Positions 204 through 63,814 of a DNA stretch of 64,000 nt are shown piece after piece. The DNA comes from Dendrobates tinctorius. Lineage: Eukaryota. The stretch covers positions 1,674,001-1,738,000 of the forward strand of contig NW_027361982.1 in the NCBI RefSeq assembly GCF_039654945.1. Direction: 5' to 3'. A model generated the notes under the pieces. That model searched no databases. It was not told the DNA's origin and worked only from the letters and a program-made list of their open reading frames with translations. A program made the position numbers and the translations under genes. The stretch's first letter is position 1. Each line of letters opens with the position of its first letter.

Positions 204-37685
<37,482 letters not shown>

Positions 37686-38284
37686 GCTGCTGGCGCCTCC
37701 TCCTGGTAGGAATGTGCCCTCACCTGTGCTGCCCCCACCCTAACTGTCCTCTGCCCCTCAGCTATCCGGGCATAGCAGGAAGTGGCCCCTGCACCAGCTG
37801 CCTCCTCCCAGGGCCCCTGAGAGCCTCCCTGGCCGGGGCGGATGTCCTCAGCCTGTCCTGGCTCTGCTCCTCCCGCCTCTCCCTGTGCAGATCTACAGAC
37901 GCATCTGTCTCTCTGGATCCCTCTGTCTCTCCCTTTCTCTCTGTTTCTTTCTTTCCTCTCTGTTACAAGCTATCACTTCCTCTCTTTTGGGATCTGCCTT
38001 CTCTTAAAGCGGCCACAAGCCACAGCCCCACCACTTAAAGCAGCAACGCCACATGCACCTTCCCCCACACCAGGATCTGCAGCCCCCAGGGGTTTGTACA
38101 GTATGGAGGGAGGGGAGCGCACACCTGGCAGGTGGCCGCATGATACTCCACATAAAGTCTAAATCCACATGGAAAATATTTAGAACTTCTCAATCATCAA
38201 CCAATCACACAGCAGCTTTGATTTCATTAATCTTCCCCAAAGACTCTGCGGAGCAGACAGATCCCAAAATATAAGGGACGCATG

Positions 38285-38980: not shown

Positions 38981-41900
38981 TCATTGTGGTATCAGGCGGA
39001 TGAGCTGAGCTTCACCTGGCGCCAGCTGCACGCTGTCCTGGAGCAGCTGACCTCTGTTGCGCTCCAGTTTGGTAGTCAACAATAATCGAACAGAGTTTGA
39101 GAAATAGGGAAATCGCAGAGACACATTGTGTGATCGATCAGAAGGCCCAATAAGGACTAAAAGCGTGGAACAGGCCCAGGAGGATAATGCACTGTAAGAG
39201 GAGCCATTAGATAAAAGCTGCAGCCAACCAGAGTAGAGCGCAGGGTTCTGGTATCGCAGGTGGAGAAGAGAACGGAGCCAGGAGGGCGGCGGGAGGGACT
39301 GTGGAGACAATGAGGAAAAAGGCATCAACTGGGACAGATTATCAGGAAGTTCTCACTATGCAAAAGCACTCAATTCGTGTAGATTATAATACTGCCCCCT
39401 ACGTACAAGAATATAATTACTATAATACTGCCCCCCTATATACAAGAATATAACTACTATAATACTGCCCCCCTATATACAAGAATATAACTACTATAAT
39501 ACTGATCCCTATGTACAAGAATATAACTACTATAATACTGCCCCTATATACAAGAATATAAACTACTGTAATACTGTGCCATTCACAAGAATATAACTAC
39601 TATAATACTGCCCCTACGTACAAGAATATAACTAATATAATACTGCCCCCTATATACAAGACTATAATTACTATAATACTGCTCCTATGTGCAAGAATAT
39701 AACTATTATAAGAGTGTGTGCACACGTTGCGGATTCTGCTGTGGATCCGCAGCGGATTTGGCCCTGCGGATCCGCAGCAGTTTCTGCTGCATTGTACAGT
39801 ACCTTTATTTTCTATGGAAAATGAAAACTGCTGTGCACATGCTGCGGATTTTTCAGCGCGAATTTGCTGCGGTTTCAAATCCGCAGCATGTCACTTCTTT
39901 GTGCCGAACCCGCTGCAGTTTTACACCTGCTCTATTGTACAGGTGTCTAACCGCAGGCTAATCCGCAGATAAATCCGCAGCAGAATCCGCAACGTTTGCA
40001 CGCACCCTAATACTGCCCCTATGTACAAGAATATAACTACTATAATACTGCTCCCTAACTACAAGAATATAACTACTATAATACTGCCCCCTATGTACAA
40101 GAATATAACTACTATAATACTGCCCCCTATGTACAAGAATATAACTACTATAATACTGCCCCTACATACAAGAATATAACTACTATAATACTGCCCCTGT
40201 GTACAAGAATATAACTTCTATAATACTGCCCCCTATGTGCAAGAATATAACTACTATAATGCTGCCCCTACGTACAAGAATATAACTACTATAATACTGC
40301 CCCTACGTACAAGAATATAACTACTATAATACTGCCCCTACGTACAAGAATATAACTACTATAATACTGCCCCCTATGTGCAAGAATATAACTACTATAA
40401 TACTGCCCCTATGTACAAGAATATAACTACTATAATACTGCCCCTATGTACAAGAATATAACTACTATAATACTGCCCCCTATGTACAAGAATATAACTA
40501 CTATAATACTGCCCCCTATGTACAAGAATATAACTACTATAATACTGCTCCTATGTGCAAGAATATAACTACTATAATACTGCTCCTACGTGCAAGAATA
40601 TAACTACTATAATACTGCCCCCTATGTACAAGAATATAACTACTATAATACTGCCCCCTATGTACAAGAATATAACTACTATAATACTGCTCCTATGTGC
40701 AAGAATATAACTACTATAATACTGCTCCTACGTGCAAGAATATAACTACTATAATACTGCTCCTATGTACAAGAATATAACTACTATAATACTGCCCCTA
40801 CGTACAAGAATATAACTACTATAATACTGCCCCCTATGTACAAGAATATAACTACTATAATACTGCCCCCTATGTACAAGAATATAACTACTATAATACT
40901 GCCCCCTATGTACAAGAATATAACTACTATAATACTGCCCCCTATGTACAAGAATATAACTACTATAATACTGCGCCCTATGTACAAGAATATAACTACT
41001 ATAATACTGCCCCCTATGTACAAGAATATAACTACTATAATACTGCTCCTATGTGCAAGAATATAACTACTATAATAGTGCCCCTACGTACAAGAATATA
41101 ACTACTATAATACTGCCCCCATGTACAGTGCTGTTCCCACTATATCTTTTTCAGCTGTGTGATAGTGTCTCAGTCTTTCTGATGTGCGATACATATCTCA
41201 GTATGTGTGACCCTTATCGGGTCTGTGGCTCGTTTGCTGACCCCGAGGTGACACACCTGGTTCAGGGACAGTATGACGGTTCCAGGTAGGGTTACAGCCA
41301 GGAATTGTCTCAACTCCAGAGAATCAGTGTCGTCAGGTGTCACCTGCAGAAAATGAGAGGTTACTTTATGAAGTGCCCTTCCCCTCCCCCATTCCCCACT
41401 CACCTCCCAGGCCAGATCCTTCATGTCTGACCCCAAAGTGAACGGTTGCAGGTTCCAGTTGAGTAGCGGACAGGTGCACAGAAGTTGGGACTTATTTTTG
41501 GGTGCATCCTCGTCATCACACAGCCAATTAGGAAGCAGGATTAGCCTAATTATAGAGTTTTGTTAGAAATTTTGCTTTTGCGTGGATACGTCACTGTGCG
41601 ATTACTCGGTTGTCACCTTTCCTCCTCGCCGGCAATTTCTACTTCATTCAGGAGGATCTGAGATATCTGCAAAAAATCAAGACGTATCGTAGTCACCGAC
41701 TATAGTACAAGTGTCCAAAACTGTTCCCCGAACAACTATCAAAGTGATGTGATGTTAGATCAGATGTAGTCACAGCCCCGCCCCCTGGTGATGATATCAC
41801 TGAGTTGTCAGCCCCGCCCCCTGCTTATGACATCACTGAGTTGTCAGCCCCCCCCACCCCCAAGTACTAGTGCTGACAGTACTTCATTTCCCCTCTCACC

Positions 41901-43939
41901 ATCATTACAGTTGTTTTCTTGTCACCTAAAAGCTGGAACCCAGATACTCCATCTTCCATCCAGCTCCGGGCAGAGTCCTGCACAAGATGGGTTCAAGTTA
42001 CTAAAGCCGAGGGGCCACAGCGCTGGAGTGTGTAGGAGGGCTGTGAAATTTGTAGCGGATGACAGATATTTTTTAATAACTGCTGTGATGGTAATAATAT
42101 CTACAGTGTCACCACTCTTACAGTAAAAAAGCCCGCCCATCTTGGCAGACAGAACCTTCTTTCCTGTGCTACACACAGCTTCTCTGAGACTCCTTTCATT
42201 CTTTCCAGAGGTTTCCCATCTCTAGCTTCAGTAAAGATGACTGATCATGACTAAGACACAAACAGGTGAGAGATCCTACTGAAGAAACGAACAGGGTTCT
42301 TTACAGCAAGAGCAGAAAGGCCAAGATGGTTCATTGAGGAACAGTGGTGTGAATGTGTAAAATGGAAGTGCGCCCCCTCGTGGAGGAATAAAGGGTCATA
42401 CAGCCACACCAGAGTTTATCAATGAACCATTCTGTCCTCCCCTGTAAGGTTCATCTCCTTTCTCCACAGCTTGTCTGCTCTTACAGTAAAGAAGACTGTT
42501 CATTTCTGGAAACAGAATTCCTCCAACAGGAGGGGGCGCTCTTGTCTTCTGAGCAGTCAGATTTGCACCATATTGTATGGGCCATTTCTATACTGGCTCA
42601 GATTTATCTTCTCGCCTCAGAACACTAAATCCATGGAATTCCACGATAGTCTCTGGACGCTCATCAGTGCCAATATTACATCCCGTGTGTACGTTTTATT
42701 ACAGGGGTGTCTGGGTTTCCTATCTCAATGCAGCAGAGAACCGCTGCAGATATCCGCACCTGAGCCCCTAATAAGTGGCCGCCTTTAGATGCAGCTGCCT
42801 GATGCTGAGCTCTCCATGACCTGCAGACCGCAAGGCTTTTGGCCAACTTCCCACAATGAGTTTTTGATGCTGCAGATTTTCTGCACCAATTACAGAAATT
42901 AGATTCATTGCGTTTTTTAAAGTTACATTTTTCTCAGCTGCTTTGGTTTTTCCTCCCTGTGATCAGGTGCTAAATATACTGCTTTGTGTTGGACACGTCC
43001 CCGCTGCTTAGCGGTGATCAAACTTCATTGATAAAGTCAAGTGCAGATTACTTTTGCTTTTTTTTTTTTTAAAAAAACATAAATAACTAAATCTCCAAGT
43101 TTATGGAGAAAATCCAGAAAGGGAAATTAATATACAGAAGAGAATCTGCTCCAAAAGGCACAAGAAAAAAAAAGTGTGTGAACAGAGTCTTCCATTCTCT
43201 CCCCACAATCTCATGTATGAGCATCTCCCATAGACTGTATGACATCACAAAGTTGGGGAACATCACCTTCAGCCTCTGGACTTGATGGCCATCATACTCC
43301 TCCAGTATCCGGACCTCCAGGATGATGTGGAGACCTGGGAACGTGAAGACCACAGAGGTGATTACGACTCCGGGCCTGGTCACTCAGCGCAGCCCTACAG
43401 ACCGCCACAGCCACTTACCGTATTTCTGCCCCTCGGTCACCTGACCTCTCACACTCCCATTAGTCACCTCTTCATGGGGGAGTATGAGACCACCACACCC
43501 CAAGGATGACGCCTCTCGTATTCTGTGCATCACATCTGTAAGACATGGGGGGGGGGGGCAAGAGATGGGTAGAGGGGACAGGTCAGACTGCCCCCACATA
43601 ACACACGCTGCCCCCACACAGTGGGGTTTGTAGTTTCATGTCACCCAGAGAGAATCACAAGCCTGACATCACTGCCCCCCCTCCGTCACACATTGCAGGT
43701 GGGGTGGGGGGTCCCGCATATAACTTACCGGTCTGTGGCGCCAGTCCTGCGATGCGGCAGATCACTCGGCGTTGGTGCCACACGCTTGGTGGAGGCGGCA
43801 CGTACGCCTGGGCAAGAATGGCGATGGCAGAACTAAGCAGCGCAGCAAGTAATACCCAGAAAAGCACCAGCAGCCCCCGACGTACGCACACCCAGCCACG
43901 GGCGTCCTGCTCGGGCCTCAGGAGCGGCTGGGACTCCAT
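38981..43939 (-). CDS. Divergent SLC3 (4F2hc/rBAT)-like type II membrane glycoprotein with degenerate alpha-amylase-like ectodomain, 8 coding exons, 356 aa
   Basis: Exons: 43729-43939, 43419-43535, 43267-43334, 41900-41977, 41617-41666, 41404-41545, 41257-41343, 38981-39298. All GT-AG, phases 1,1,0,0,2,0,0, 1071 nt, no internal stop. Motifs collinear with SLC3A2 (recalled): WVCVRRGLLVLFW-TM-AIAILAQ (cf WVRTRWALLLLFW..AVVIIVR), WHQRRVICRI (cf WWHTGALYRI), GLHIILEV (cf IRVILDL), DSARSWMEDGVSGFQ (cf DALEFWLQAGVDGFQ), FLAVTLPGTVI (cf LFTLPGTPVF), LRYQNPALYSG, LLLTT...LAPGEAQLIRL (cf LLLST...LEPHEGLLLRF). ATTAAA on the minus strand at 38941-38946. Confidence 0.85.
39385..41120. repeat. 35-36-bp minisatellite (TATAACTACTATAATACTGCCCCCTATGTACAAGAA)n in the last intron of the SLC3-like gene
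   Basis: Clear tandem periodicity, interrupted by the MITE at 39712-40007. Confidence 0.96.
39712..40007. mobile_element. Harbinger-type MITE inserted in satellite
   Basis: TAA|GAGTGTGTGCACACGTTGCGGATTCTGCTG...CAGCAGAATCCGCAACGTTTGCACGCACCC|TAA; the duplicated TAA comes from the satellite unit. Confidence 0.85.
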
Positions 43940-44405
43940 GTCTCCCTGGCTGCGTCTCCTCCTGCAGATCTTATACTTCAGTATTTGCTGACCAGAAAAT
44001 CGCCACCAGGTGTGAAGAGGAGTGTCACATTCTACATCCACCATCATCGCCCCACCCGAGGAGACAACGAGGGTCCAAGCAACCGACCAACCTCTGTACA
44101 ATCACAGTACCACCAAAAATGGAACACACACACAAAAAATCAAAATTATGCACCCAATCTACAAAACCAGGTACCTGAAAAGTCAGTGGTCAGACCTGCT
44201 TAACTAGCTAATCATGGCGGCCACCGCATTGGGGGGATGGCTGGATGAGCAGTTTTCCAGTCCCCAGACACTGCTGGCAGCTGCCACCTTCCTACACACT
44301 GAGGCCATGATCCCGGCAGCCAGCGATAATGTGAGCCCAGGTGAGGCTGCGGTGATGATAACCTGGACCGGACGAGGGAGGCCTCGATCATGGCTCCACA
44401 TAAAG

Positions 44406-45233
44406 CAGTGGTCCTCAAACTTAAACAGGGGGCCAGATCATAGTTCCTCAGACCATTGGAGGGCCGGAATATAGTTTAAAAAAAAATATTGAACAAATTC
44501 CTATGCACACTGCACATACTGCATCTTATTTTGAAGTAAAACAACAAAACAGGAAAAAATGCAAATTTAAAATGAAGAAGTAAAGTTAAATCAACAAACT
44601 TACAAATTTTTCAAGGGGTTCTTTGAATACCCTACACTTTGCGTCAATTTTTCCTCTTTCTTGATGTCATTGTTTCCTAGGGATTCCAAATTGCTATTAG
44701 TAAAATACCAATATATATATACCTATATATATATATACACAGCGGTACAAAAACAATATAGCAACAATAAAATTGCCCACACAGAGACATACAGACTGCA
44801 CTGTCCATCAATGCAGCCTCAACAGTGCCCATATTGGTGGGACTCCACTTTTACCTCTGGCTAAGACTGGTGTGGTGTGAGAGTCCCCGATAGGCAGGTA
44901 AATGCCCCTAATAGGAGCACAGGTCCCCAATAGGATCCGGGGTTAAAAAAAAATACCAGTACTCACCTGCTCTGAAGAGGCGCCCACTCAACTCCGTCTT
45001 CTTCTGGCAGAGGCAGCGTGACGTCATCAGGCCGCGCAGGTCGTCTGTGTGTGCTCGCTGCATACGTAGGGCTGCGCAACACCTTTCCTCGCTGACTCCT
45101 TGTTCCGCCCGCGATTACAGGGCCTGCTGGCATTGAACTGCAGTGAAGTTCAATGTCGGCCAGGCCCAGGGGGCCGGATAAAAGTCCTCGGCGGGCCGCA
45201 TGTAGCCCAGGGGCCGTAGTTTGAGGACCCCTG
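44406..45233. mobile_element. Non-autonomous hAT transposon
   Basis: TIRs CAGTGGTCCTCAAACT / AGTTTGAGGACCCCTG; exact 8-bp TSD ACATAAAG (44398-44405, 45234-45241). Confidence 0.9.
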
Positions 45234-45679
45234 ACATAAAGGCTCCGGTGGTTTCCATGGAGATGTGTGATAATCATTTGAGCACACGATCCGTTTTATA
45301 GTCACCACGGTCTGACGGATCCTGATCACGTCAGAGGGTCGCAAATCAAAATCACCCTCATCATCCTCGTCCCGCTGGATCTGGTCTTCATGATGTGTTA
45401 CTAATTTTCTTGTGATTTCATGTTTTTTTTATTTTTCTTTAGTAAAATATTTAGAAAGCTGCTTTACGATCTCTGTGACAAAACCGCCACGTGAATACAA
45501 CCGCACATGGAGATCGCGTCAATATGGCCGCCTTTATGGATTGTGTGTGTGTGCGAGGTGTGGCCAGTTTTTGTCACAACCTTGGTTCACATCCACAAGG
45601 TGCATTCACACCAGTAGCACGGCAGCCATGACGGTGGGGAAACAGCAGAAATATGGCTGCTACATCGGATGCCGTATAA

Positions 45680-46137
45680 GGCTAGTTTCACACTAGCGTT
45701 TATGAGCGCAGCGACGGCCTGCGCACGGCCGCCGCTAAGCCCCGCCCCGGCTGCGCCTCCGCCTCCGCCGGTAGCTCCGCCTACCGGCGCATGACGCTGC
45801 ATGCGCCCTGCGTCCCCTATCTTTATCACTGGGGGTGCAGGCCGTGCGCAGTATGCGTTTGGCGGCGCATGCGCCTTTTTGACGGTGCGCCGACCTGCGC
45901 CAAACGCAACCTGCTGCAGTTTGGTTGCGCCGGCGCACCGTCAAAAAGGCGCATGCGCCGCCAAACGCATATTGCGCACGGCCTGCGCCCCCAGTGATAA
46001 AGATAGGGGACGCAGGGAGCATGCAGCGTCATGCGCCGGTAGGCGGAGCTACCGGCAGAGGCGCGGCAGGGGCGGGGCTTAGCGGCGGCCGTGCGCAGGC
46101 CGTCGAAGCGCTCATAAACGCTAGTGTGAAACTAGCC
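45680..46137. mobile_element. Near-perfectly palindromic CpG-rich MITE (Harbinger-type)
   Basis: GGCTAGTTTCACACTAGCGTTTATGAGCGC...GCGCTCATAAACGCTAGTGTGAAACTAGCC; the whole element folds back; flanks TAA / TTA. Confidence 0.85.
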
Positions 46138-46249
46138 TTACAGAGGCACAATAGGAGGATAGTGCCGTATACAGCACAGAGCGGCATATGGCTCCACGCA
46201 CAGGCCCCCAACACTGCAGAGTAGAGACCCTTAATGGTGTGGGGTCGAT

Positions 46250-48925
46250 TTGTATGATTGTAGTATAGTAGTGTGGAGACATATCATTGTAGTATAGTAG
46301 TGTGGAGACGTATCATTGTAGTATAGCAGTGTGGAGACGTATCATTGTAGTATAGCAGTGTGGAGACATATCATTGTAGTATAGTAGTGCAGAGATGTAT
46401 GATTGTAGTATAGGGGTGCGGAGACGTATCATTGTAGTATAGTAGTGTGGAGAAGTATAGTAGTGTGGAGACGTATCATTGTAGTATAGTAGTGTGGAGA
46501 CATATCATTGTAGTATAGTAGTGTGGAGACATATCATTGTAGTATAGTAGTGTGGAGACATATCATTGTAGTATAGTAGTGTGGAGACATATCATTGTAG
46601 TATAGTAGTGTGGAGACATATCATTGTAGTATAGTAGTGTGGAGACGTATCATTGTAGTATAGTAGTGTGGAGACATATCATTGTAGTATAGTAGTGTGG
46701 AGACGTATCATTGTAGTATAGTAGTGTGGAGACGTATCATTGTAGTATAGTAGTGTGGAGACGTATCATTGTAGTATAGTAGTGTGGAGACGTATCATTG
46801 TAGTATAGTGGTGCGGAGAGGTATGATTGTAGTATAGGGGTGCGGAGACGTATCATTGTAGTATAGCGGAGATGTATGATTGTAGTATAGCGGTGTAGAG
46901 ACGTATGACTGTAGTATAGCGGAGACGTATCATTGTAGTATAGTGGTGTGGAGACGTATGATTGTAGCATAGTGGTGCAGAGATGTATGATTGTAGTATA
47001 GGGGTGTGGAGACGTATCATTGTAGTATAGCGGAGATGTATGATTGTAGTATAGCGGTGTGGAGACGTATGACTGTAGTATAGCGGAGACGTATCATTGT
47101 AGTATAGTGGTGCAGAGATGTATGATTGTAGTATAGGGGTGTGGAGACGTATCATTGTAGTATAGCGGAGATGTATGATTGTAGTATAGCGGTGTGGAGA
47201 CGTATGATTATAGTATAGCGGTGTGGAGATGTATGATTGTAGTATAGTGGTGCAGAGATGTATGATTGTAGTATAGGGGTGCGGAGACGTATGACTGTAG
47301 TATAGCGGAGACGTATCATTATATTATAGCGGTGCAGAGACGTATGACTGTAGTATAGCGGAGACGTATGATTGTAGTATAGCGGTGTGGAGACGTATGA
47401 TTGTAGTATAGCGGTGCGGAGATGTATGATTGTAGTATAGCGGTGCAGAGATGTATGATTGTAGTATAGGGGTGCGGAGACGTATGATTATAGTATAGCG
47501 GTGTGGAAACGTATGATTGTAGTATAGCGGTGCAGAGATGTATGATTGTAGTATGGGGTGCGGAGACGTATGACTGTAGTATAGCGGAGATGTATGATTG
47601 TAGTATAGCGGAGACGTATGATTGTAGTATAGCGGTGTGGAGACGTATGATTGTAGTATAGTGGTGCAGAGATGTATGATTGTAGTATAGGGGTGCGGAG
47701 ACGTATCATTATAGTATAGCGGTGCGGAGACGTATGACTGTAGTATAGCGGAGACGTATGATTGTAGTATAGCGGTGTGGAGACGTATGATTGTAGTATA
47801 GCGGTGTGGAGACGTATGATTGTAGTATAGCAGTGTGGAGACGTATGATTGTAGTATAGCGGTGTGGAGACGTATGATTATAGTATATCGGTGTGGAAAC
47901 GTATGATTGTAGTATAGCGGTGCAGAGATGTATGATTGTAGTATAGGGGTGCGGAGACGTATGACTGTAGTATAGCGGAGACGTATGATTGTAGTATAGC
48001 GGTGTGGAAACGTATGATTGCAGTATAGCGGTGCAGAGATGTATGATTGTAGTATAGGGGTGCGGAGACGTATGACTGTAGTATAGCGGAGACGTATGAT
48101 TGTAGTATAGCGGAGACGTATGATTGTAGTATAGCGGTGTGGAAACGTATGATTGTAGTATAGCGGTGTGGAAACGTATGATTGTAGTATAGTGGTGTGG
48201 AGACGTATGATTGTAGTATAGCGGTGTGGAGACGTATGATTGTAATATAGCGGTGTGGAGACGTATGATTGTAGTATAGCGGTGTGGAAACGTATGATTG
48301 TAGTATAGTGGTGTGGAGACGTATGATTGTAGTATAGCGGTGTGGAAACGTATGATTGTAGTATAGTGGTGTGGAGACGTATGATTGTAATATAGCGGTG
48401 TGGAGACGTATGATTGTAGTATAGCGGTGTGGAGACGTATGATTATAGTATAGCGGTGTGGAGACGTATGATTGTAGTATAGCGGCGTGGAGACGTATGA
48501 TTGTAGTATAGCGGTGTGGAAACGTATGATTGTAGTATAGTGGTTTGGAGACGTATGATTATAGCACAGCGGTGTGGAGACATATGATTGTAGTATAGGG
48601 GTGTGGAGACGCATTATTAGGCTATGTGCACACGTTGCGGAATCTGCTGCGTTTCCGCAGCGGTTTTGGCCCTGCGGAAACGCAGCAGTTCCGCTGACCA
48701 TGTACAGTACAATGAAACCCTATGGGGTTTCAAAAACGCTGTGCTGACGGTGCGGATTTTTCCGCACGGTTTTGCTGCGGTTTACAAACCGCAGCATGTC
48801 AATTGTTTGCGCGGATTCCGCAGCGGTTTCATACCTTTACCATAGTAGAGGTGTGAAACCGCAGGTCACTTTACCTGCGTTTCCGCAACGTGTGCACATA
48901 GCCTTAATATAGCGGTGTGGAGACG
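46250..48925. repeat. 29-bp minisatellite (GATTGTAGTATAGCGGTGTGGAGACGTAT)n with shorter deletion variants
   Basis: Tandem array ending about 230 bp upstream of the RTN2 ATG. Confidence 0.96.
48620..48903. mobile_element. Harbinger-type MITE inserted in satellite edge
   Basis: TTA|GGCTATGTGCACACGTTGCGGAA...TTCCGCAACGTGTGCACATAGCC|TTA. Confidence 0.9.
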
Positions 48926-49151
48926 TCTGATGACAGGATTGTGGGGTGGAGCGTTCCCTTGTCTCTCTGAATGGCTGTGTGCAGTCATTTCCTGCCCCCT
49001 CTCAGGCCTTTGTCTGCTGCGCTCGCCCCTCCCTGTGTTTGTGAGTTGTGTGTGTCAGGTTTGCTCCACAATGAGATGCTAGGCAGGGAGACAACACGCT
49101 GTGGGGTGCGCTCTTGTGGGTCTGTATGGGTATCACCGGCAGACAGCGGAT

Positions 49152-52100
49152 ATGGGACACGTCCTGTCGTTCACACACTGCAGTAAGTGTCGCTGCTGTA
49201 CAATTGTGTCTGGCTGTGAGTGCAGGTGCGGCATCTCCTCCATCATTGTCTTATGTAGGTGCTGCATATGGGTGTATCCTATACAGAGTGAGCGTGGGGT
49301 CCTCGTGTGACGGTCACCCAGATTATCACGTCATGTGCGACTGTCACACTACAACAGTAGTATCTGATGCTCTGACCGTATAAGCGGTGCGTGTATATAT
49401 CTGTGTGTTGGCGGTGCCGTGTTTGTATATATCTGTGTGTTGGCGGTGCCGTGTGTGTATATATCTGTGTGTTGGCGGTGCCGTGTGTGTATATATCTGT
49501 GTGTTGGCGGTGCCGTGTGTGTATACATCTGTGTGTTGGCGGTGCCGTGTGTATACATCTGTGTGTTGGCGGTGCCGTGTGTGTATATATCTGTGTGTTG
49601 GCGGTGCCGTGTGTGTATATATCTGTGTGTTGGCGGTGCCGTGTGTGTATATATCTGTGTGTTGGCGGTGCCGTGTGTATACATCTGTGTGTTGGCGGTG
49701 CCGTGTGTGTGTATATATCTGTGTGTTGGCAGTGCCGTGTGTGTATACATCTTTGTGTTGGCAGTGCCTGGGTGGGGGCGGTGCCGTGTGTGTATATACC
49801 TGTGTGTTGGCGGTGCCGTGTGTGTATACATCTGTGTGTTGGCGGTGCCGTGTGTGTATACATCTGTGTGTTGGCGGTGCCGTGTGTGTATATACACCTG
49901 TGTGTTGGCGGTGCCGTGTGTGTATATACACCTGTGTGTTGGCGGTGCCGTGTGTGTATATACACCTGTGTGTTGGCGGTGCCGTGTGTGTATATACACC
50001 TGTGTGTTGGCGGTGCCGTGTGTGTATATACACCTGTGTGTTGGCAGTGTCTGGGTGGGGGCGGTGCCGTGTGTGTATATATTTGTATTAGCGGTGCCGT
50101 GTGTGTATACATCTGTCTGTTGGCAGTGCCTGGGTGGGGGTGGTGCCTGTGTGTTGGCGGTGCCGTGTGTGTGTGTGTGTATACATCTGTGTGTTGGCGG
50201 TGCCGTGTGTATATACACCTGTGTGTTGGCGGTGCCGTGTGTGTGTATATTTGTGTGTTGGCGGTGCCGTGTGTGTATATACACCTGTGTGTTGGCAGTG
50301 CCTGGGTGGGGGCGGTGCCGTGTGTGTATATACACCTGTGTGTTGGCAGTGCCTGGGTGGGGGCGGTGCCGTGTGTGTATACACCTGTGTGTTGGCGGTG
50401 CCGTATGTGTATATATTTGTATTAGCGGTGCCGTGTGTGTATATACACCTGTGTGTTGGCAGTGCCTGGGTGGGGGCGGTGCCGTGTGTGTATACACCTG
50501 TGTTGGCGGTGCCGTGTGTGTATATATTTGTATTAGCGGTGCTGTGTGTGTATATATCTGTGTGTTGGTGCCGTGTGTATATATACACCTGTGTGTTGGC
50601 AGTGCCTGGGTGGGGGCGGTGCCGTGTGTGTATACACCTGTGTGTTGGCAGTGCCTGGGTGGGGGTGGTGCCTGTGTGTTGGCGGTGCCGTGTCTGTATA
50701 CATGTGTATTAGTGGTGCCATATGTGTATACACCTGTGTGTTGGCGGTGCCGTGAGTGTATACATCTGTGTGTTGGCGGTGCCGTGTGTGTATATATTTG
50801 TATTAGCGGTGCCGTGTGTGTATATACACCTGTGTGTTGGCGGTGCCGTGTGTGTATACATCTGTGTGTTGGCGGTGCCGTGTGTGTATATATTTGTATT
50901 AGCGGTGCCGTGTGTGTATATACACCTGTGTGTTGGCGGTGCCGTGTGTGTATACATCTGTGTGTTGGCGGTGCTGTGTGTGTATATATTTGTATTAGCG
51001 GTGCCGTGTGTGTATATACACCTGTGTGTTGGCAGTGCCTGGGTGGGGGCGGTGCCGTGTGTGTATACACCTGTGTGTTGGCGTTGCCGTGTGTGTATAT
51101 TTGTATTAGCGGTGCTGTGTGTGTATATATCTGTGTGTTGTCGGTGCTGTGTGTATATATACACCTGTGTGTTGGCAGTGCCTGGGTGGGGGCGGTGCCG
51201 TGTGTGTATACACCTGTGTGTTGGCAGTGCCTGGGTGGGGGTGGTGCCTGTGTGTTGGCAGTGCCGTGTCTGTATACATGTGTATTAGTGGTGCCATATG
51301 TGTATACACCTGTGTGTTGGCGGTGCCGTGAGTGTATACATCTGTGTGTTGGCGGTGCCGTGTGTGTATATATTTGTATTAGCGGTGCCGTGTGTGTATA
51401 TACACCTGTGTGTTGGCGGTGCCGTGTGTGTATACATCTGTGTGTTGGCGGTGCCGTGTGTGTATATATTTGTATTAGCGGTGCCGTGTGTGTATATACA
51501 CCTGTGTGTTGGCGGTGCCGTGTGTGTATACATCTGTGTGTTGGCGGTGCTGTGTGTGTATATATTTGTATTAGCGGTGCCATGTGTGTATATACACCTG
51601 TGTGTTGGCAGTGCCTGGGTGGGGGCGGTGCCGTGTGTGTATACACCTGTGTGTTGGCGTTGCCGTGTGTGTATATTTGTATTAGCGGTGCTGTGTGTGT
51701 ATATATCTGTGTGTTGGCGGTGCTGTGTGTATATATACACCTGTGTGTTGGCAGTGCCTGGGTGGGGGCGGTGCCGTGTGTGTATACACCTGTGTGTTGG
51801 CAGTGCCTGGGTGGGGGTGGTGCCTGTGTGTTGGCAGTGCCGTGTCTGTATACATGTGTATTAGTGGTGCCATATGTGTATACACCTGTGTGTTGGCGGT
51901 GCCGTGAGTGTATACATCTGTGTGTTGGCGGTGCCGTGTGTGTATATATTTGTATTAGCGGTGCCGTGTGTGTATATACACCTGTGTGTTGGCGGTGCCG
52001 TGTGTGTGTATACATCTGTGTGTTGGCGGTGCCGTGTGTGTATATATTTGTATTAGCGGTGCCGTGTGTGTATATACACCTGTGTGTTGGCAGTGCCTGG

Positions 52101-55100
52101 GTGGGGGCGGTGCCGTGTGTGTATATACCTGTGTGTTGGCGGTGCCGTGTGTGTATACATCTGTGTGTTGGCGGTGCCGTGTGTGTATACATCTGTGTGT
52201 TGGCGGTGCCGTGTGTGTATACATCTGTGTGTTGGCGGTGCCATGTGTGTATACATCTGTGTGTTGGCGGTGCCGTGTGTGTATATACACCTGTGTGTTG
52301 GCGGTGCCGTGTGTGTATATACACCTGTGTGTTGGCGGTGCCGTGTGTGTATATCCACCTGTGTGTTGGCGGTGCCGTGTGTGTATATCCACCTGTGTGT
52401 TGGCGGTGCCGTGTGTGTATATCCACCTGTGTGTTGGCGGTGCCGTGTGTGTATATCCACCTGTGTGTTGGCGGTGCCGTGTGTGTATATCCACCTGTGT
52501 GTTGGCGGTGCCGTGTGTGTATATCCACCTGTGTGTTGGCGGTGCCGTGTGTGTATATCCACCTGTGTGTTGGCGGTGCCGTGTGTGTATATCCACCTGT
52601 GTGTTGGCGGTGCCGTGTGTGTATATCCACCTGTGTGTTGGCGGTGCCGTGTGTGTATATCCACCTGTGTGTTGGCGGTGCCGTGTGTGTATATCCACCT
52701 GTGTGTTGGCGGTGCCGTGTGTGTATATCCACCTGTGTGTTGGCAGTGTCTGGGTGGGGGCGGTGCCGTGTGTGTATATATTTGTATTAGTGGTGCCGTG
52801 TGTGTATACATCTGTCTGTTGGCAGTGCCTGGGTGGGGGTGGTGCCTGTGTGTTGGCGGTGCCGTGTGTGTGTATACATCTGTGTGTTGGCGGTGCCGTG
52901 TGTATATACACCTGTGTGTTGGCGGTGCCGTGTGTGTATATATTTGTGTGTTGGCTGTGCCGTGTGTGTATATATTTGTGTGTTGGCGGTGCCGTGTGTG
53001 TATATATTTGTATTAGCGGTGCTGTGTGTGTATATATCTGTGTGTTGGCGGTGCCGTGTGTATATATACACCTGTGTGTTGGCAGTGCCTGGGTGGGGGC
53101 GGTGCCGTGAGTGTATACATCTGTGTGTTGGCGGTGCCGTGTGTGTATATATTTGTATTAGCGGTGCCGTGTGTGTATATACACCTGTGTGTTGGCGGTG
53201 CCGTGTGTGTATACATCTGTGTGTTGGCGGTGCCGTGTGTGTATATATTTGTATTAGCGGTGCCGTGTGTGTATATACACCTGTGTGTTGGCGGTGCCGT
53301 GTGTGTATATATTTGTATTAGCGGTGCCGTGTGTGTATATACACCTGTGTGTTGGCAGTGCCTGGGTGGGGGCGGTGCCGTGTGTGTATATATTTGTATT
53401 AGCGGTGCTGTGTGTGTATATATCTGTGTGTTGGCGGTGCCGTGTGTATATATACACCTGTGTGTTGGCAGTGCCTGGGTGGGGGTGGTGCCTGTGTGTT
53501 GGCAGTGCCGTGTCTGTATACATGTGTATTAGTGGTGCCATATGTGTATACACCTGTGTGTTGGCGGTGCCGTGAGTGTATACATCTGTGTGTTGGCGGT
53601 GCCGTGTGTGTATATCTTTGTATTAGCGGTGCCGTGTGTGTATATACACCTGTGTGTTGGCGGTGCCGTGTGTGTATACATCTATGTGTTGGCGGTGCCG
53701 TGTGTGTATATATTTGTATTAGAGGTGCCGTGTGTGTATATACACCTGTGTGTTGGCAGTGCCTGGGTGGGGGCGGTGCCGTGTGTGTGTACACCTGTGT
53801 GTTGGCGTTGCCGTGTGTGTATACATTTGTATTAGCGGTGCTGTGTGTGTATATATCTGTGTGTTGGCGGTGCCGTGTGTATATATACACCTGTGTGTTG
53901 GCAGTGCCTGGGTGGCGGCGGTGCCGTGTGTGTATACACCTGTGTGTTGGCAGTGCCTGGGTGGGGGTGGTGCCGTGTGTGTATACACCTGTGTGTTGGC
54001 GGTGCCTGGGTGGGGGTGGTGCCTGTGTGTTGGCAGTGCCGTGTCTGTATACATGTGTATTAGTGGTGCCATATGTGTATACACCTGTGTGTTGGCGGTG
54101 CCGTGAGTGTATACATCTGTGTGTTGGCGGTGCCGTGTGTGTATATATTTGTATTAGCGGTGCCGTGTGTGTATATACACCTGTGTGTTGGCGGTGCCGT
54201 GTGTGTATACATCTGTGTGTTGGCGGTGCCGTGTGTGTATATATTTGTATTAGCGGTGCCGTGTGTGTATATACACCTGTGTGTTGGCGGTGCCGTGTGT
54301 GAATACATCTGTGTGTTGGCGGTGCCGTGTGTGTATATATTTGTATTAGCGGTGCCGTGTGTGTATATACACCTGTGTGTTGGCAGTGCCTGGGTGGGGG
54401 CGGTGCCGTGTGTGTATATATTTGTATTAGCGGTGCCGTGTGTGTATATACACCTGTGTGTTGGCGGTGCCGTGTGTGAATACATCTGTGTGTTGGCGGT
54501 GCCGTGTGTGTATATATTTGTATTAGCGGTGCCGTGTGTGTATATACACCTGTGTGTTGGCAGTGCCTGGGTGGGGGCGGTGCCGTGTGTGTATATATTT
54601 GTTTTAGCAGTGCCGTGTGTGTATACACCTGTGTGTTGGCGGGGCCGTGTGTGTATATATGTGTATTAGTGGTGCCGTGTGTGTGTATACACCTGTGTGT
54701 TGGCAGTGCCTGGGTGGGGGTGGTGCCTGGGTGTTGGCGGTGCCGTTTGTGTATATATGTGTATTAGCGGTGCCGTGTGTGTGTGTATACACCAGTGTGT
54801 TGGTGGTGCCGTACGTGTATATCTTCGTGTTATCAGTGCTGCCAGTATGTTTGTAAAATTAGTCTCTATGGTAATTAAACATATGTTAGTGGGGGCGGGG
54901 CCGTGATGGACTCGTGCATTTATGCAAAACTTACCCAAAACTTATCAAAATTGTGCCTGTAATGTCTGTTTCTCCTGCAGAGGACGCTCCATCCACTGCC
55001 TCCAGCACCCCGGACTCCTGCCCTCCAGATGGTAAAGTCCCCGTGTGTATGTGTGTCCTCTATACTTGTCACATGACATGCACTATTGCTTTGTAGCTCC

Positions 55101-58100: not shown

Positions 58101-61100
58101 GGTTAGGCCACGAAACTGTGGTGTGCTCCTCAGTGGGAGGGGGGAGCGGCCCAGTGTCGGGGGCAGCTCCGGTAGCCTTGGTGCCCCTAAATGCTGTTGC
58201 CGCTAATCACTTAGGTGAGAAGCGGCCGCAGTTTGAGGGGGCTGTTGGGGCTGGGTGTTCCGATCCTCCCAAGATCCCGTTCTGCGTTGGCGCTGCTGGT
58301 CAGCAAGATCCTGATGTAAATGATCAGCGGCGCCTCACAGCGGCAAAAGTTCGGCGCCTAATGAAGCAAAGAAACTTGCCAACTGGTGATGTGGAGGGCA
58401 CCCGTAAGTCCAGGGGTGATGTCGCCTCCAGTTGGAGGTGGATAATGGTGATACTGTTGGTGTTGATGTGGTCACTGGTCCGGTTGCCCCCCCCGGTGGT
58501 GGCAGTACCCGTTATTAGTTATGCCGCTGTCACCTCCGGGGAAAATAGGGCGTACTCCTTGTCTCCGAGCTCTGGGGATGGCATGTTGCAGCGGCGTCTC
58601 CTGGAGGCTCTAAAGAAGGGGGAGAGATCAGTAAAGGTAGAGAGTCGAGAGGTTGATCTATCCTTCTGGATAGAGAGGCATGTCCTCAGGGCCTTCCGAG
58701 AGCAAAATGGGGGAAATACAGTGTGGTCCCTTCCGACAGCCGGGCCAGGTAGTGTGCGTAGGAATGTGGTCCGTCTTCGGTGGAGGGGCACACCTCTGTG
58801 TCGTTAAAGAGGGGGAAGGATTCCTCCTCTGAGGCAGAGGATAATGGGAGTGGAAAGAAGAAAGCCATCTTACTCAATCACCAATGATGGCGGTACCCTC
58901 TCCGTTGACGCTGGCGTCCATTAATGTCGCCAGCATAAAGTCAAATGCAGCTAGATTTGCGGCCTTTGATTTTCTCAGCCGTGTTGAAGCTGACATTTTC
59001 TTTTTGCAAGAGACCAGACTGCCAAACATGGCAGACGTGTTTAAAGCCAAGAAGAAGTGGAGACTTGGGCCCTCCTATTGATCTCTTGCGGCCGAGCCGT
59101 ATAGCGGAGTGGCGGTCCTTTTTACCGCACTGGTGGAATGCCGACGGGCTATTGAATTAGAAATGGTGAGGTGCCTGATCTTGGATGTCCTCATGAAGGG
59201 ACAAGAGCTCCGGCTTATTAACATCTATGGTCCCCAATCTAAATGGGACCGGAAGTGTCTCTTTATGAGGATCAAGCCCTACCTTTTTACAAGTCGGCAG
59301 GTTGTCTTTGGAGGGGACTTCACTACTGTCACAAGGCCCTGAGATAGAGGAGGTTCCAGAGACAAGCTGACTTATGATAGCGTCGCCCTTAATTGTATAG
59401 CTAGTAAGGCTCGCTTGGTGGATGTCCACATTCGGCACACCCCAGGCCACGAGGGGTTCACCTATCATAGAGGTAACTGTAAGTCCAGAATAGATAGGTT
59501 TTATTTAAAGGAAGAAGCTGTCTCTTCAGCAGTGTCTGTTGTTGAGGTGGAGTTCTCCGACCACTGCTAATTTTGTTTTCTCTGAATGTTAGAGACCCTC
59601 CGGATGGGAAGAGGCTTTTGGAGGCTCAATTTGTCTCTCTTGGAAGAAGCGGACATAAGACAGTCCTTTGAGGATTTTCTTCAGAGCCAGGTACCCTTAC
59701 TGGATCTTTGTAGTAGTAAGTTAGAGTGGTGGGAGATGGTCAAGAAAAGGGGGGGCGAGATTCTTCCGCCAGCTCTCGAGCCTCAGGAGTCTGAACAGGT
59801 ACCGCCTGTATCAGGGTCTGAGGAGGAAACTCGAGCATCTTGTCTCAACTGGAGGTAGCCGCGAGGAGATCTCCAGAGTGAAATCTTTGCTCATGAGGTG
59901 TCAGTACGATACACACGCATCTTTGGTTTTTGAGAGGGATTACGGGAAGTACCGCTCGCCCGACCCTTACAGAAACTGCAAGATGTCAGTGAATAGTAAA
60001 GTTGTTATAGGACTGGTTGACACTGCGGGGTCCCTGAGGCGATCCAGATCAGGGATCCTGGACGTTGTCAGATCCTTCTAGTCGCACCTCTTGGGGAAGA
60101 GGGATCTTGATTGGGATAAGATGTCGGCTTTCCTGGCTGAAGTCGTTCCTGAACCAGGGGTAGACCCCTCTCTTGACGTATTGACAGAGATGATCAGGGA
60201 AGAGAAAGTTAAGTTGGCGATTGAAGGGCTTGCCCCAGAAAAATCACCCGGTCCAGATGGCTTAACATCTGAGTTTTATAAGACCTTTAAGGACGCTTTG
60301 GTTCCACTCTTGACTGAGGTATTCAATGAGTGTCTTTCCTCGGGCACTCTGCCAAAGTCAATGAGGAGGACTGCCCTGATCATCTTGTCAAAGGGTAAAG
60401 ACCCATCTTGCATTGAGAATTGGTGTCCCATAGCGCTTCTCAATGCAGACAGGAAGGTTCTGGCAAAGGTGCTGTTTAATCGGCTGGTGAAATTTGCACC
60501 CTGACTCCTTTCAGAGGCCCAGCATTGCTCTGTTCCAGTTCGCAGCACATTTAGTGCAGTGCTCGGTGTCCGGGTGGTGGTGGAGCAGGGTAGGGCAGGT
60601 CACTGGAAGGGGTACATGCTGTCACTGGACCAGGCAAAAGCGTTTGATCGGGATAATCACAAGTACCTCTGGTTTGTCCTTCTGAGATATGGCCTGCCGG
60701 GGGGGGGGGGGGGGGTGTTGTGAGGTGGGTTTATCTTGTGGGACTATGGGACACTGGGGTGTTTGGGGAAACACTGGCACTGCGTGATCTGGCCTATGGA
60801 CGTTGGACATGGACTGAGGCATGAGACGCAGGACCAGCTCTCTGGTCAGTGCGGGGGTTGGGAATGGTGGGCTTCAGTGTGGGGTGTTTAGTCTTGTATA
60901 TATTTGTATAGTTTGGTTATTTTATATACTGTATATGCTGTATTTATATAAAAAAAAAAAAAGTTTATATATTTATGTCAGCCTTTGTTTATTTTAATTT
61001 TCTTATTAGTTTGTTTGGTGACCGTAAGGTGTAAGTTATTATTAGTTGTTATTCTGTATATATGTATAATATGTGTGAGAGGAGAGAATGAGCGGCTGGA

Positions 61101-63814
61101 CTAGTGTTCAGTATACGTATTATTTTTCTGGCTGATATTCTTATGTTTCTGTTATTATTATTATTGTTTTTTTCATTTTTATAATAAAAGATCTACAGGA
61201 TGTAGCTCAGGATCAGTACAGGATAAGTAATGCATGTACACAGCGACAGCAGAATAGTGAGTGCAGCTCTGGAGTAAGATGCTGATTTTATATAGGACAT
61301 CACCGCTTCCTCGTTATCAGTTATTATACGCAGTGCTGGCATGTCTGGTATATGGGGACAGATACAATGGCTTTCCCCTGGCTCGTCCTCCATTGTTGCA
61401 GCTTATCGCTCTCTGCGGTCTCTGATCTCTATAATCCGCACAGCTTTGTATTAAAGCTTCTGTGAATGAGAGGAATCTCTGGATGCAGCGCTCACCTCTC
61501 CCAGCTGGGCCTGGAGGTGGGATAATGGAGAGGATTTATGGGGTCCTCCTTTGTCATTAGCTTCTTCACCACTGCAGGAGCTGGGGGGCACTTCTTTGCT
61601 GCCTTTACTTTGATAAAACCTTCTATAATATGTAAGTGCCGACACCCTCAGGGCACGAGGCGCCCACCACAGGCGATGTCTTGCTGACATATGAGGGGTG
61701 CCCTGCATGGAGTGGGCAGCAGCTAACCCTGGGTGTGGACATCTGTTCTCCGTGGCTTTTTCTGGCCACAGACGGGGGTTCTCAGGACAGAGGTTGTTAC
61801 TAGTCTCAGGGGGGTTGTCCCTGTCCGTCTATATTTAGTGTCTTCTTCTTCCCTCACAGACGCTGGTCGTAGAGACTCTCGCCACCTGTCACCCCAGAAC
61901 CGGAGCAGCTACCAGGAGGACACCATGAAGAAAGCCGGTGAGTGGAGGCCGAGAATGAGGAAAATGGCTACAAAAGGGACACTTATGTCAGTCTTAATGT
62001 GAGGCCACCCTACAGGATCAGGCCCCTCCACAGCCATGGCTGTCAGTTAAAGTATCTGGGTCCCTCCTGTAAAACGGTCAGGGTCCCACAGCTCCATCCA
62101 CCACCTAATAACTCAATATGTGGAAAACACAGGGAGGATCTTTTGAGGTTCACTTAATTTTGGAATCCGTAGAAGGTGGTAATATGGACTCCTTTATAGC
62201 TGACGGAGCTCCCTAGTGGCCGAGGACCAGGGCTTGTTGAGTATATGGGCCACATGAGTTCATCTTATTACTTGCCAACTTGGTGGAAGTGAAGTCAGGT
62301 CTGACCGCCCTGCAGCTCTGTAAGCCAGGAGTGTGGGGCCCCGTCACTGATAGTCCTGGAGTGAAACTACAGAATATTACACATCCCTGGGATTATGTCT
62401 GGTATAATATCACTGTGATGTCATCACCCAGCGTCACGATAGAGGGCGAACAGCTCCACGCATAGCACAGTCTTCCTACTGAGGATCAGTGTTGCATAAT
62501 GACCATATGCCCGTGCTGTCGCTCTCTGCGCGCCCGTGCTGTCGCTTACCTCGCGCTCTCTGCGCGCCCGTGCTGTCGCTTACCTCGCGCTCTCTGCGCG
62601 CCCGTGCTGTCGCTTACCTCGCGCTCTCTGCGCGCCCGTGCTGTCGCTTACCTCGCGCTCTCTGCGCGCCCGTGCTGTCGCTTACCTCGCGCTCTCTGCG
62701 CGCCCGTGCTGTCGCTTACCTCGCGCTCTCTGCGCGCCCGTGCTGTCGCTTACCTCGCGCTCTCTGCGCGCCCGTGCTGTCGCTTACCTCGCGCTCTCTG
62801 CGCGCCCGTGCTGTCGCTTACCTCGCGCTCTCTGCGCGCCCGTGCTGTCGCTTACCTCGCGCTCTCTGCGCGCCCGTGCTGTCGCTTACCTCGCGCTCTC
62901 TGCGCGCCCCTGCTGACGCTTACCTCGCGCTCTCTGCGCGCCCCTGCTGACGCTTACCTCGCGCTCTCTGCGCGCCCCTGCTGACGCTTACCTCGCGCTC
63001 TCTGCGCGCCCCTGCTGACGCTTACCTCGCGCTCTCTGCGCGCCCCTGCTGACGCTTACCTCGCGCTCTCTGCGCGCCCCTGCTGACGCTTACCTCGCGC
63101 TCTCTGCGCGCCCCTGCTGACGCTTACCTCGCGCTCTCTGTGCCTGTGCTCATATCTACCTTGCTCTCTGTGACTGTGCTGACTCTTTCTTGCCTCTCTC
63201 TCTTTCAGTGGCAGACCTCTTATACTGGCGAGACATCACTCTCTCTGCCGGCTGTCTCACCGGTCTCACCGTGTGCCTGCTGTGCCTCATCCACTTCAGT
63301 GTGATCAGCATCATCTCCTACTCCTGTCTCCTCGTCCTCAGCGCAACATTGATAATACGACTCTACTGCAGACTCCTGAAGAAGGGAGACGGAATGAATC
63401 CCTTCCAGTGAGTGCGGATATATAACCAGCGGACAGCTGTGGGGGTTGCTTAGCATGATCTGTGCAGTGTTAATGTATGTAGCAGTGTTGGGGTCCTCAG
63501 CTTAGAGGGGTATCGTGTGCTATACATGTATCAGCGTGTGCAGGAGAGTTCAGAAATCTCATTCACTTCGCTGATTCTGTAAAACGCTGCGTGTTGTCCT
63601 CAACGATAAAACACAGAAAAACTGCAGCGTGGGAACAGGCCCTTATAGTCTGATATCCGCTGTTCCTTTCCTCAGGAAGTACCTGGACATGGATCCCATT
63701 CTGCCGCCCCAGCAGGTTGAGGTGGTCGCTGCTCGTCTTGTCGTTCTCACCTTTACTGCGCTCTCCACCCTCCGCAGACTCTTCTTAGTGCAGGACACAA
63801 AGGAGTCACTGAAG
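49152..63814 (+). CDS. RTN2: Reticulon-2, 5' portion (first six coding exons; gene continues past the window end)
   Basis: Exons 49152-49182 ([10 protein letters not shown]), 54981-55031 ([13 protein letters not shown]), 55317-55622 (PTFSYITIG...), 61860-61937 (...MKKA), 63209-63407 (VADLLYWRD...NPFQ, reticulon homology domain), 63676-63814 (KYLDMD...[15 protein letters not shown]). GT-AG with consistent phases. N-terminus resembles RTN2 [24 protein letters not shown]; divergent orientation to VASP as in mammals. Extra exons could be hidden in introns. Confidence 0.9.
49385..54830. repeat. GT-rich 30-34-bp minisatellite (CTGTGTGTTGGCGGTGCCGTGTGTGTATATACAC)n with higher-order structure, RTN2 intron 1
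   Basis: Tandem units with variant cassettes; near-identical ORFs recur at a 576-bp offset (50709, 51285). Confidence 0.96.
55690..56852. repeat. 86-bp satellite (CACAGTGACTGCACCAGCAGAATAGTGAGTGCAGCTCTGGAGTATAATACAGGATGTAACTCAGGATCAGTAATGTAATGTATGTA)n
   Basis: Period about 86, with a 442-bp higher-order duplication (56105/56547); resumes at 61194-61280 after the LINE. Confidence 0.93.
56853..61193 (+). mobile_element. Tx1/L1-clade non-LTR retrotransposon, internally deleted and degenerate
   Basis: ORF1-like coiled-coil region from about 56988. ORF2 from 58884: APE motifs SINV, FLQET, GGDF, SRIDRF, SDH; RT motifs [35 protein letters not shown]. Stops throughout; jumps at about 60715 to an AT-rich 3' UTR ending AATAAAAGATC. 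Confidence 0.88.
61829..61838 (+). promoter_or_regulatory. MEF2 consensus site at a candidate internal RTN2 short-isoform promoter
   Basis: CTATATTTAG matches CTA(A/T)4TAG; it lies about 20 nt before the exon carrying in-frame ACCATG (61925) for MKKA-VADLLYW. Confidence 0.45.
62510..63140. repeat. 34-bp CpG-rich minisatellite (CTGTCGCTTACCTCGCGCTCTCTGCGCGCCCGTG)n
   Basis: About 18 nearly identical units in two variant blocks, ending about 70 bp before the RHD exon acceptor. Confidence 0.96.

Follow-up and report, generated by a model that had tools for sequence, protein, structure and literature searches.

The minus strand of the window (the whole stretch of Dendrobates tinctorius DNA that was analysed, 64,000 nucleotides) contains at 38981-43939 a gene for a homologue of SLC3A2 (4F2hc/CD98hc), a compact frog-lineage paralogue in which the neck between the transmembrane helix and the first barrel strand has prolines in place of the heavy-chain cysteine. 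Exon 1 was readable in 10 anuran species, from dendrobatids to Ascaphus; none of them has the neck cysteine, and the loss was therefore considered old and fixed instead of a local slip or chance. Without a cysteine in the neck, the canonical neck-to-EL2 disulfide with an SLC7 light chain cannot form.

Structure, transcription and surroundings of the gene

The splice-site model comprised 8 exons and 1071 nt of coding sequence for 356 amino acids, from the ATG at 43939-43937 to the stop codon at 38983-38981 (all coordinates of the gene refer to the minus strand). Logan contigs of four public runs were aligned on positions 41150-45400. Spliced contigs from three of the runs, two of the window's species (X16 and X19) and one of a close relative (X3), joined six of the seven introns as GT..AG exactly at the predicted positions, and for the seventh intron a loose contig end at 41257 carried the first 30 bases of exon 8, so that all introns of the coding region were represented. 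The runs were small (65-124 million letters) and the gene was deeply covered by spliced contigs; they were therefore taken as RNA and the gene as expressed. The gene is real, functional and transcribed.

Exon 1 (43729-43939, residues 1-70 and one base of codon 71; joint 43535/43729) codes for the short cytoplasmic tail, the transmembrane helix, the neck and strand beta-1, and the region 43740-43830 lies inside it. Exon 2 (43419-43535, residues 71-109) has an invariant LGCGG, exon 3 (43267-43334, residues 110-132) strand beta-3 as placed by the AF2 model, and exon 4 (41900-41977, residues 133-158) GVSGFQLL, which is strand beta-4. These are followed by exon 5 (41617-41666, residues 159-174), exon 6 (41404-41545, residues 175-222) with C184, C198 and C200, and exon 7 (41257-41343, residues 223-251) with strand beta-8 TLPGTVILSLNQ; the contig joints define exons 2 to 6, and the joint 41343/41404 together with the loose end at 41257 define exon 7. 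The last exon (38981-39298, residues 252-356 and the stop) codes for the beta-sandwich C domain with the invariant C294, its strands lying at residues 285-352 in the AF2 model. Among the listed differences between the window's species and its sister species in exons 1, 2 and 6, 10 codon changes were synonymous and 5 non-synonymous, as would be expected under purifying selection.

The accepted protein start is MESQPLL at the ATG 43939-43937. A longer N-terminus beginning at either of two in-frame upstream ATGs near 44044 was rejected, as the sister species has a stop there and does not have the first ATG. Substitution density between the window and the sister species was about 4 times as high upstream of the accepted ATG as in exon 1, and a Met-Glu-Ser/Thr-x-Pro-Leu-Leu start is common to the orthologues, with extra preceding residues in the Engystomops and Ascaphus models. 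The cytoplasmic tail is 17 to 21 residues long. Its ESQPLL (43919-43936) fits an acidic dileucine-type sorting motif (E-x-x-x-L-L/I), and a motif of this type was found in 10/10 species with a readable exon 1 (ESQPLL, ETQPLL, ESMPLL, ELQPLL and ESQPIL), the remainder of the short tail being variable across the same species.

A second candidate first exon, with contig joints from 43535 to 44604 and from 44675 to 44966, was discarded for its stops in the exon-2 frame and a depth of 3-4% of the main form. In this rare transcript the upstream exons 44966-45184 and 44604-44675 are spliced straight to exon 2 and exon 1 is skipped; the stretch that holds them had high depth and shared mismatches in all four runs and is probably a repeat. 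The transcript was treated as a minor or non-coding form and as no source of another neck. One run showed a 5′UTR intron at 44094-44195. The annotated X2 isoforms of Ranitomeya variabilis (P0009) and R. imitator (P0010) skip exon 4 or exon 7; both skips are in frame (78 nt with strand beta-4 and its GVSGF, and 87 nt with strand beta-8), and either one would break the barrel.

Read by eye, the gene is flanked by two other exons, one of EVH1 type (VASP/EVL-like) at 10496-10831 on the minus strand and one with a reticulon domain (RTN-like, LLYWRD) at 63121-63408 on the plus strand. The Hyperolius orthologue (L001, 1-8748) is likewise arranged head-to-head with a reticulon gene (Pfam PF02453). LINE-type endonuclease and reverse transcriptase-like ORFs at 58845-60700 on the plus strand, between the SLC3A2-like gene and the reticulon exon, look like a retrotransposon fragment. 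Long minisatellite arrays were found in and around the gene at 39400-41150, about 35400-37700 and 46300-48700, with 35-bp units filling most of intron 7 and units of about 32 bp downstream of the gene. Further arrays are marked by a strong skew of both GC and AT at 2000-6000 and 48000-54000. At 45735-46224, about 250 bp are duplicated in inverted orientation, and ORFs on the two strands encode nearly the same peptide.

Homology to SLC3A2 and distribution in frogs

Exon 1 matched the Pfam family SLC3A2_N (PF16028) with 28.5 bits (curated cut-off 27) and an E-value of 1.2e-6, and the same family was matched by 6/6 orthologues with an N-terminus (best E-value 5.9e-6). In a HMMER search of the PDB, the profile of 12 frog orthologues returned human 4F2hc/SLC3A2 at E 3e-14 and rBAT at E 0.3, the former match being composed of two stretches, one from the helix to mid-barrel and one over the C domain. 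Only the family profile reached 4F2hc, as single-exon phmmer queries of the PDB (exons 6-7; exon 8) gave no match at E up to 1. The Pfam family Alpha-amylase was undetected in the frog orthologues, and the C domain gave a weak match to Pfam DUF3459. Protein-language (Atlas) features were nearest to chordate SLC3A2 clusters (0.95).

For folding and searches, the R. variabilis orthologue (P0001, 356 aa, 90.7% identical) served as a stand-in for the window protein. Its AF2 model (mean pLDDT 70.8, pTM 0.66, with 85-89 over most of residues 70-160) consisted of a helix at 9-45 (pLDDT up to 91), a disordered neck at 45-53 (below 50, flexible), eight beta/alpha units and a beta-sandwich at 285-352. 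The top Foldseek matches were 4F2hc chains of HAT complexes (E 1e-11). With VIA-align, about 290 of the 305 ectodomain residues were superposed at 3.4-3.9 Å with Z 18.2-19.6, in every case on GH13 proteins, the Z-score being 18.2 for human 4F2hc-ED (2dh2) and 19.6 for maltogenic amylase. As modelled, the ectodomain has about 305 residues and consists of a minimal, loop-trimmed GH13 barrel followed by the C domain.

The transmembrane helix (43802-43876, about residues 22-46, type II) was located by the AF2 model and the alignments. Together with its N-terminal flank it carries WVxxRRxLLxLFW, a motif common to 4F2hc, and in the helix region 13/31 residues (42%) are identical to human 4F2hc, against 16-21% over the whole protein. 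At position 43856, one contig of the sister-species run X3 had Cys where all other sequences have the Trp of the LFW helix motif (W28C); this could be a sequence error as well as a true variant.

The nucleophile region of the barrel reads GVSGFQLLG at 41950-41924 and has no Asp, just as the earlier note had described. In the GH13 motif GFRxD of strand beta-4, the catalytic nucleophile Asp is absent: the frog sequence is GFQLL with Leu, and human 4F2hc has GFQVR. The catalytic Asp is missing in 4F2hc too (PMC8537225). Judged by these residues, the ectodomain is catalytically dead.

SLC3A2 was the best match of the frog protein both by sequence and by fold. The two share a type II topology, a single helix with a WVxxRxxLLLLFW-type motif, the Pfam SLC3A2_N domain, and GH13-like domains A and C, with neither domain B nor catalytic residues; SLC3A2 is N-glycosylated, and the frog protein has predicted N-glycosylation sequons. 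By descent, the frog protein belongs with SLC3A2. However, overall identity is only 16-21%, and the frog form is so far found only in frogs. Moreover, the frog cytoplasmic tail has about 17 residues against about 80 or more in SLC3A2, the ectodomain about 305 residues with most loops trimmed against about 420, and the ectodomain five conserved cysteines against one non-neck cysteine (C330) in human SLC3A2. The neck is Pro-rich, has Pro instead of Cys, and is 2-3 residues shorter than that of SLC3A2. With SLC3A1 (rBAT) the frog protein shares the overall architecture, but rBAT has a neck cysteine (Cys114), domain B, a Ca2+ site, full catalytic residues and a C-terminal hairpin, unlike the frog protein.

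Searched with phmmer against 1.84 billion representatives, exon 8 produced eight matches. Seven were frog proteins, with orthologues down to E 5.7e-14, and the eighth was a clam protein unrelated to the family and composed of repeats. Additional members came from word searches with the 356-aa orthologue and the family profile, which scored only the 8000 candidates sharing most words; among these candidates, the results included family members only and no canonical SLC3A2. In addition to R. variabilis, members were found in R. imitator, Anomaloglossus, Eleutherodactylus, Engystomops, Leptodactylus, Dendropsophus, Hyla, Pseudophryne, Hyperolius, Lithobates, Staurois, Rhinophrynus and Ascaphus (40% identical), and on this sampling of sequences the family is at least as old as the common ancestor of living frogs. 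No member was returned from outside Anura or from Xenopus by searches blind to relatives much below about 35% identity, which is no proof of absence. In the databases, all members are named "uncharacterized" or "hypothetical", apart from one partial UniRef entry named only after its Pfam domain, and a literature search found no paper describing the frog SLC3A2-like protein.

The neck and the remaining cysteines

The neck covers residues 47-58 (VPPPPSVWHQRR; 43766-43801) and is without cysteine in both the HMMER and the MAFFT alignment to human 4F2hc, neither of which placed a cysteine anywhere between the helix and the first strand. In the HMMER alignment, human VRAPRC-RE-LPAQKWWHTGALYRI was matched to VRAYEPP--PKSAWYQRRVLCRI of the frog family consensus, which puts the human neck cysteine at Pro48 (codon 43798-43796), where the proline run starts. 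MAFFT set the human PRC in a three-residue gap, the match of C61 to Tyr being unchanged. Both alignments paired C61 (codon 43757-43759, in VICRI) with a strand beta-1 residue of the human protein, the Tyr of ALYRI. In the AF2 models C61 lies inside strand 59-64 of R. variabilis, and the equivalent Cys64 inside strand 62-65 of Pseudophryne; pLDDT around C61 was 60-65, and the mean pLDDT of the Pseudophryne model was 59.

The earlier note had quoted the peptide AILAQAYVPPPPSVWHQRRVICRI, which is found at 43822-43751 within exon 1, and had claimed that a proline run replaces the juxtamembrane cysteine and that the nearest cysteine aligns inside the first barrel strand. Both claims agree with the two alignments, and the second also with the two models. 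The note had further proposed an alignment of orthologues and would have been refuted by any that carry the neck cysteine; among the 10 anuran species, no member did. The neck was Pro-rich in 10/10 species, reading A-Y-x-P-P-P in nine and A-Y-V-P-Q-P-P in Anomaloglossus, and a cysteine at position 61 was invariant in all ten. Exon 1 of Hyperolius was located by tblastn upstream of the short database model, next to the reticulon gene, and the count is given without Rhinophrynus, whose exon 1 lies beyond the 10-kb flank. As shown by these alignments, the neck has been without a cysteine since before Ascaphus split from other frogs.

Five ectodomain cysteines were conserved in the MAFFT family alignment, C61, C84, C184, C200 and C294, and as the number is odd, at least one of them is unpaired within the chain. 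C61, C84 and C294 were invariant across all species covering them. C84 (codon 43497-43495) belongs to the invariant LGCGG, in the turn that links helix alpha-1 to strand beta-2, and its 4F2hc counterpart in HMMER was a hydrophobic Val just ahead of beta-2. On the cytoplasmic side, C18 was variable. All four cysteine motifs that the earlier note had listed as possible sites of other disulfides are present, i.e. LGCGG (43503-43489), WLCDD (41526-41512), LCTCP (41481-41467) and WACST (39178-39164), with the reservation that in LCTCP only the second cysteine, C200, is conserved, most species having Arg or His instead of C198. The codons are 41520-41518 for C184, 41478-41476 for C198, 41472-41470 for C200 and 39172-39170 for C294.

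C184 and C200 were kept in all species covering the region except Lithobates pipiens (P0016), in which both are replaced, by Gly and Arg. Because they are lost together, the two were taken as a putative disulfide pair, and the pattern suggests an internal C184-C200 bond; the Lithobates model is odd otherwise, which makes this a lead only. P0016 reads WLG and RTRP at the two sites. Its exon 5-6 sequence is present twice, the copies being separated by a long minisatellite that has been translated (ITITYPCSLLY repeats), and this arrangement looks like a gene-model artefact. Internal ectodomain disulfides are found in rBAT (PMC8537225) and, given the putative C184-C200 bond, would be a feature common to the two proteins.

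The window protein has five N-x-S/T sequons, at N96, N192, N250, N282 and N309. Most species have those at N192, N250 and N282, about half have the one at N309, and N96 was found only in dendrobatoid species.

Proposed partner binding without the neck disulfide

The intersubunit disulfide is part of the definition of heteromeric amino acid transporters (HATs), and how necessary it is has been disputed. Functional transporters without the cysteines of this bond were reportedly obtained in 1998, according to the title of a paper cited in PMC11065870. In known complexes, the intersubunit disulfide sits in the heavy-chain neck, and the light-chain cysteine is in EL2 at the membrane surface beside the neck (PMC8537225). 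The frog protein does not have the neck cysteine by which a disulfide-linked HAT heavy chain is recognised. Its state resembles that of engineered 4F2hc C109S and light-chain cysteine mutants, which are without the intersubunit disulfide; those mutants are laboratory forms with a full-size heavy chain, whereas the frog loss is natural, fixed and combined with a minimal ectodomain. LAT1-4F2hc reduced with TCEP remains a heterodimer in solution (PMC11065870). On the other hand, human C109S has been used as a transport-defective control (PMC6242995), so that loss of the bond need not be harmless and its outcome depends on context.

We give an even chance to a reading in which the frog protein serves as an ancillary subunit bound non-covalently to a multi-pass membrane protein, an SLC7-type light chain being the most likely partner. 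In 4F2hc, the helix is tightly packed against TM4 of its light chain (PMC8537225), and the helix is the best conserved part of the frog protein; a non-covalent ancillary subunit is therefore expected. The kept WVxxRRxLLxLFW, as a sequence feature, favours a membrane partner bound without a disulfide. In such an arrangement, the helix and its cytoplasmic flank, the parts best kept relative to 4F2hc, would pack on the multi-pass partner, and the heavy-chain role would be filled without an intersubunit bond. C61 would be buried in strand beta-1, possibly close to C84, and C184 and C200 would be joined as an internal disulfide.

The same helix conservation could equally serve a partner other than SLC7. 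The helix and tail of CD98hc also bind integrin beta chains. 4F2hc itself has functions independent of amino-acid transport, one example of which has been described (PMC6242995). The frog protein might thus be a small light-chain-independent glycoprotein that keeps only the SLC3A2 scaffold, either sorted to endosomes or lysosomes via ExxPLL or acting as a chaperone or co-receptor for a non-SLC7 membrane protein. This is somewhat unlikely in our estimate. It is consistent with the lost neck cysteine, with an ectodomain about 115 residues shorter than 4F2hc-ED, and with a tail cut to about 17 residues that has yet kept an acidic dileucine-type motif in 10/10 species. However, the element by which 4F2hc docks on its light chain, the helix with its flank, is precisely the part best conserved, and nothing in the analysis points to a specific alternative partner. 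A combined reading, in which the protein is a third SLC3-type heavy chain, disulfide-free, paired with an SLC7 light chain and sorted by ExxPLL to endosomes or lysosomes, we regard as unlikely.

A covalent heavy chain with its link moved to C61, C84 or C294 is more improbable still. That C61, C84 and C294 are invariant in all species covering them, C61 across the whole anuran tree, would suit such a link, and among five cysteines a C184/C200 pair leaves three over. For C61 to serve, the strand prediction would have to be wrong and the PPPP neck act as a longer tether. The pLDDT near C61 is indeed modest, but two alignments set C61 at a core position of beta-1 and two AF2 models inside the strand. 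For C84, the LGCGG turn would be on the N-terminal, membrane-facing side of the barrel, and in HAT structures it is the N-terminal loops of the barrel that are turned towards the light chain (PMC8537225); against this, C84 matches the hydrophobic Val of 4F2hc that precedes beta-2. A moved link is also argued against by the EL2 cysteine of the light chain, which is at the membrane surface near the neck, not under the barrel core (PMC8537225). That the missing cysteine is mere decay in a functionless duplicate is scarcely credible. The barrel is too diverged for detection by Pfam Alpha-amylase and several database models are partial or oddly spliced, but the gene has an intact frame and the same exon structure, is expressed and correctly spliced, and has kept its motifs, sequons and five cysteines from Ascaphus to dendrobatids. 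A pseudogene was rejected on account of the splicing, the conservation and the 10:5 codon changes.

The description given in the earlier note was right; its interpretation, with a non-covalent partnership, a different partner or a light-chain-independent role as options, was partly supported. The frog protein has dispensed with the neck cysteine, with about one quarter of the ectodomain and with the greater part of the cytoplasmic tail, and its helix motif, barrel core, C domain and glycan sites are what evolution keeps in this heavy chain. It is a compact scaffold on which structural and engineering studies of CD98hc can draw. Disulfide-free endosomal or lysosomal pairing, if true, would make it a natural experiment on which parts of CD98hc are needed for heavy-chain function. 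If an SLC7 light chain is bound, the protein would be a third member of the SLC3 family and the first natural non-covalent one, and if none is bound, it would represent a new use of the SLC3A2 fold.
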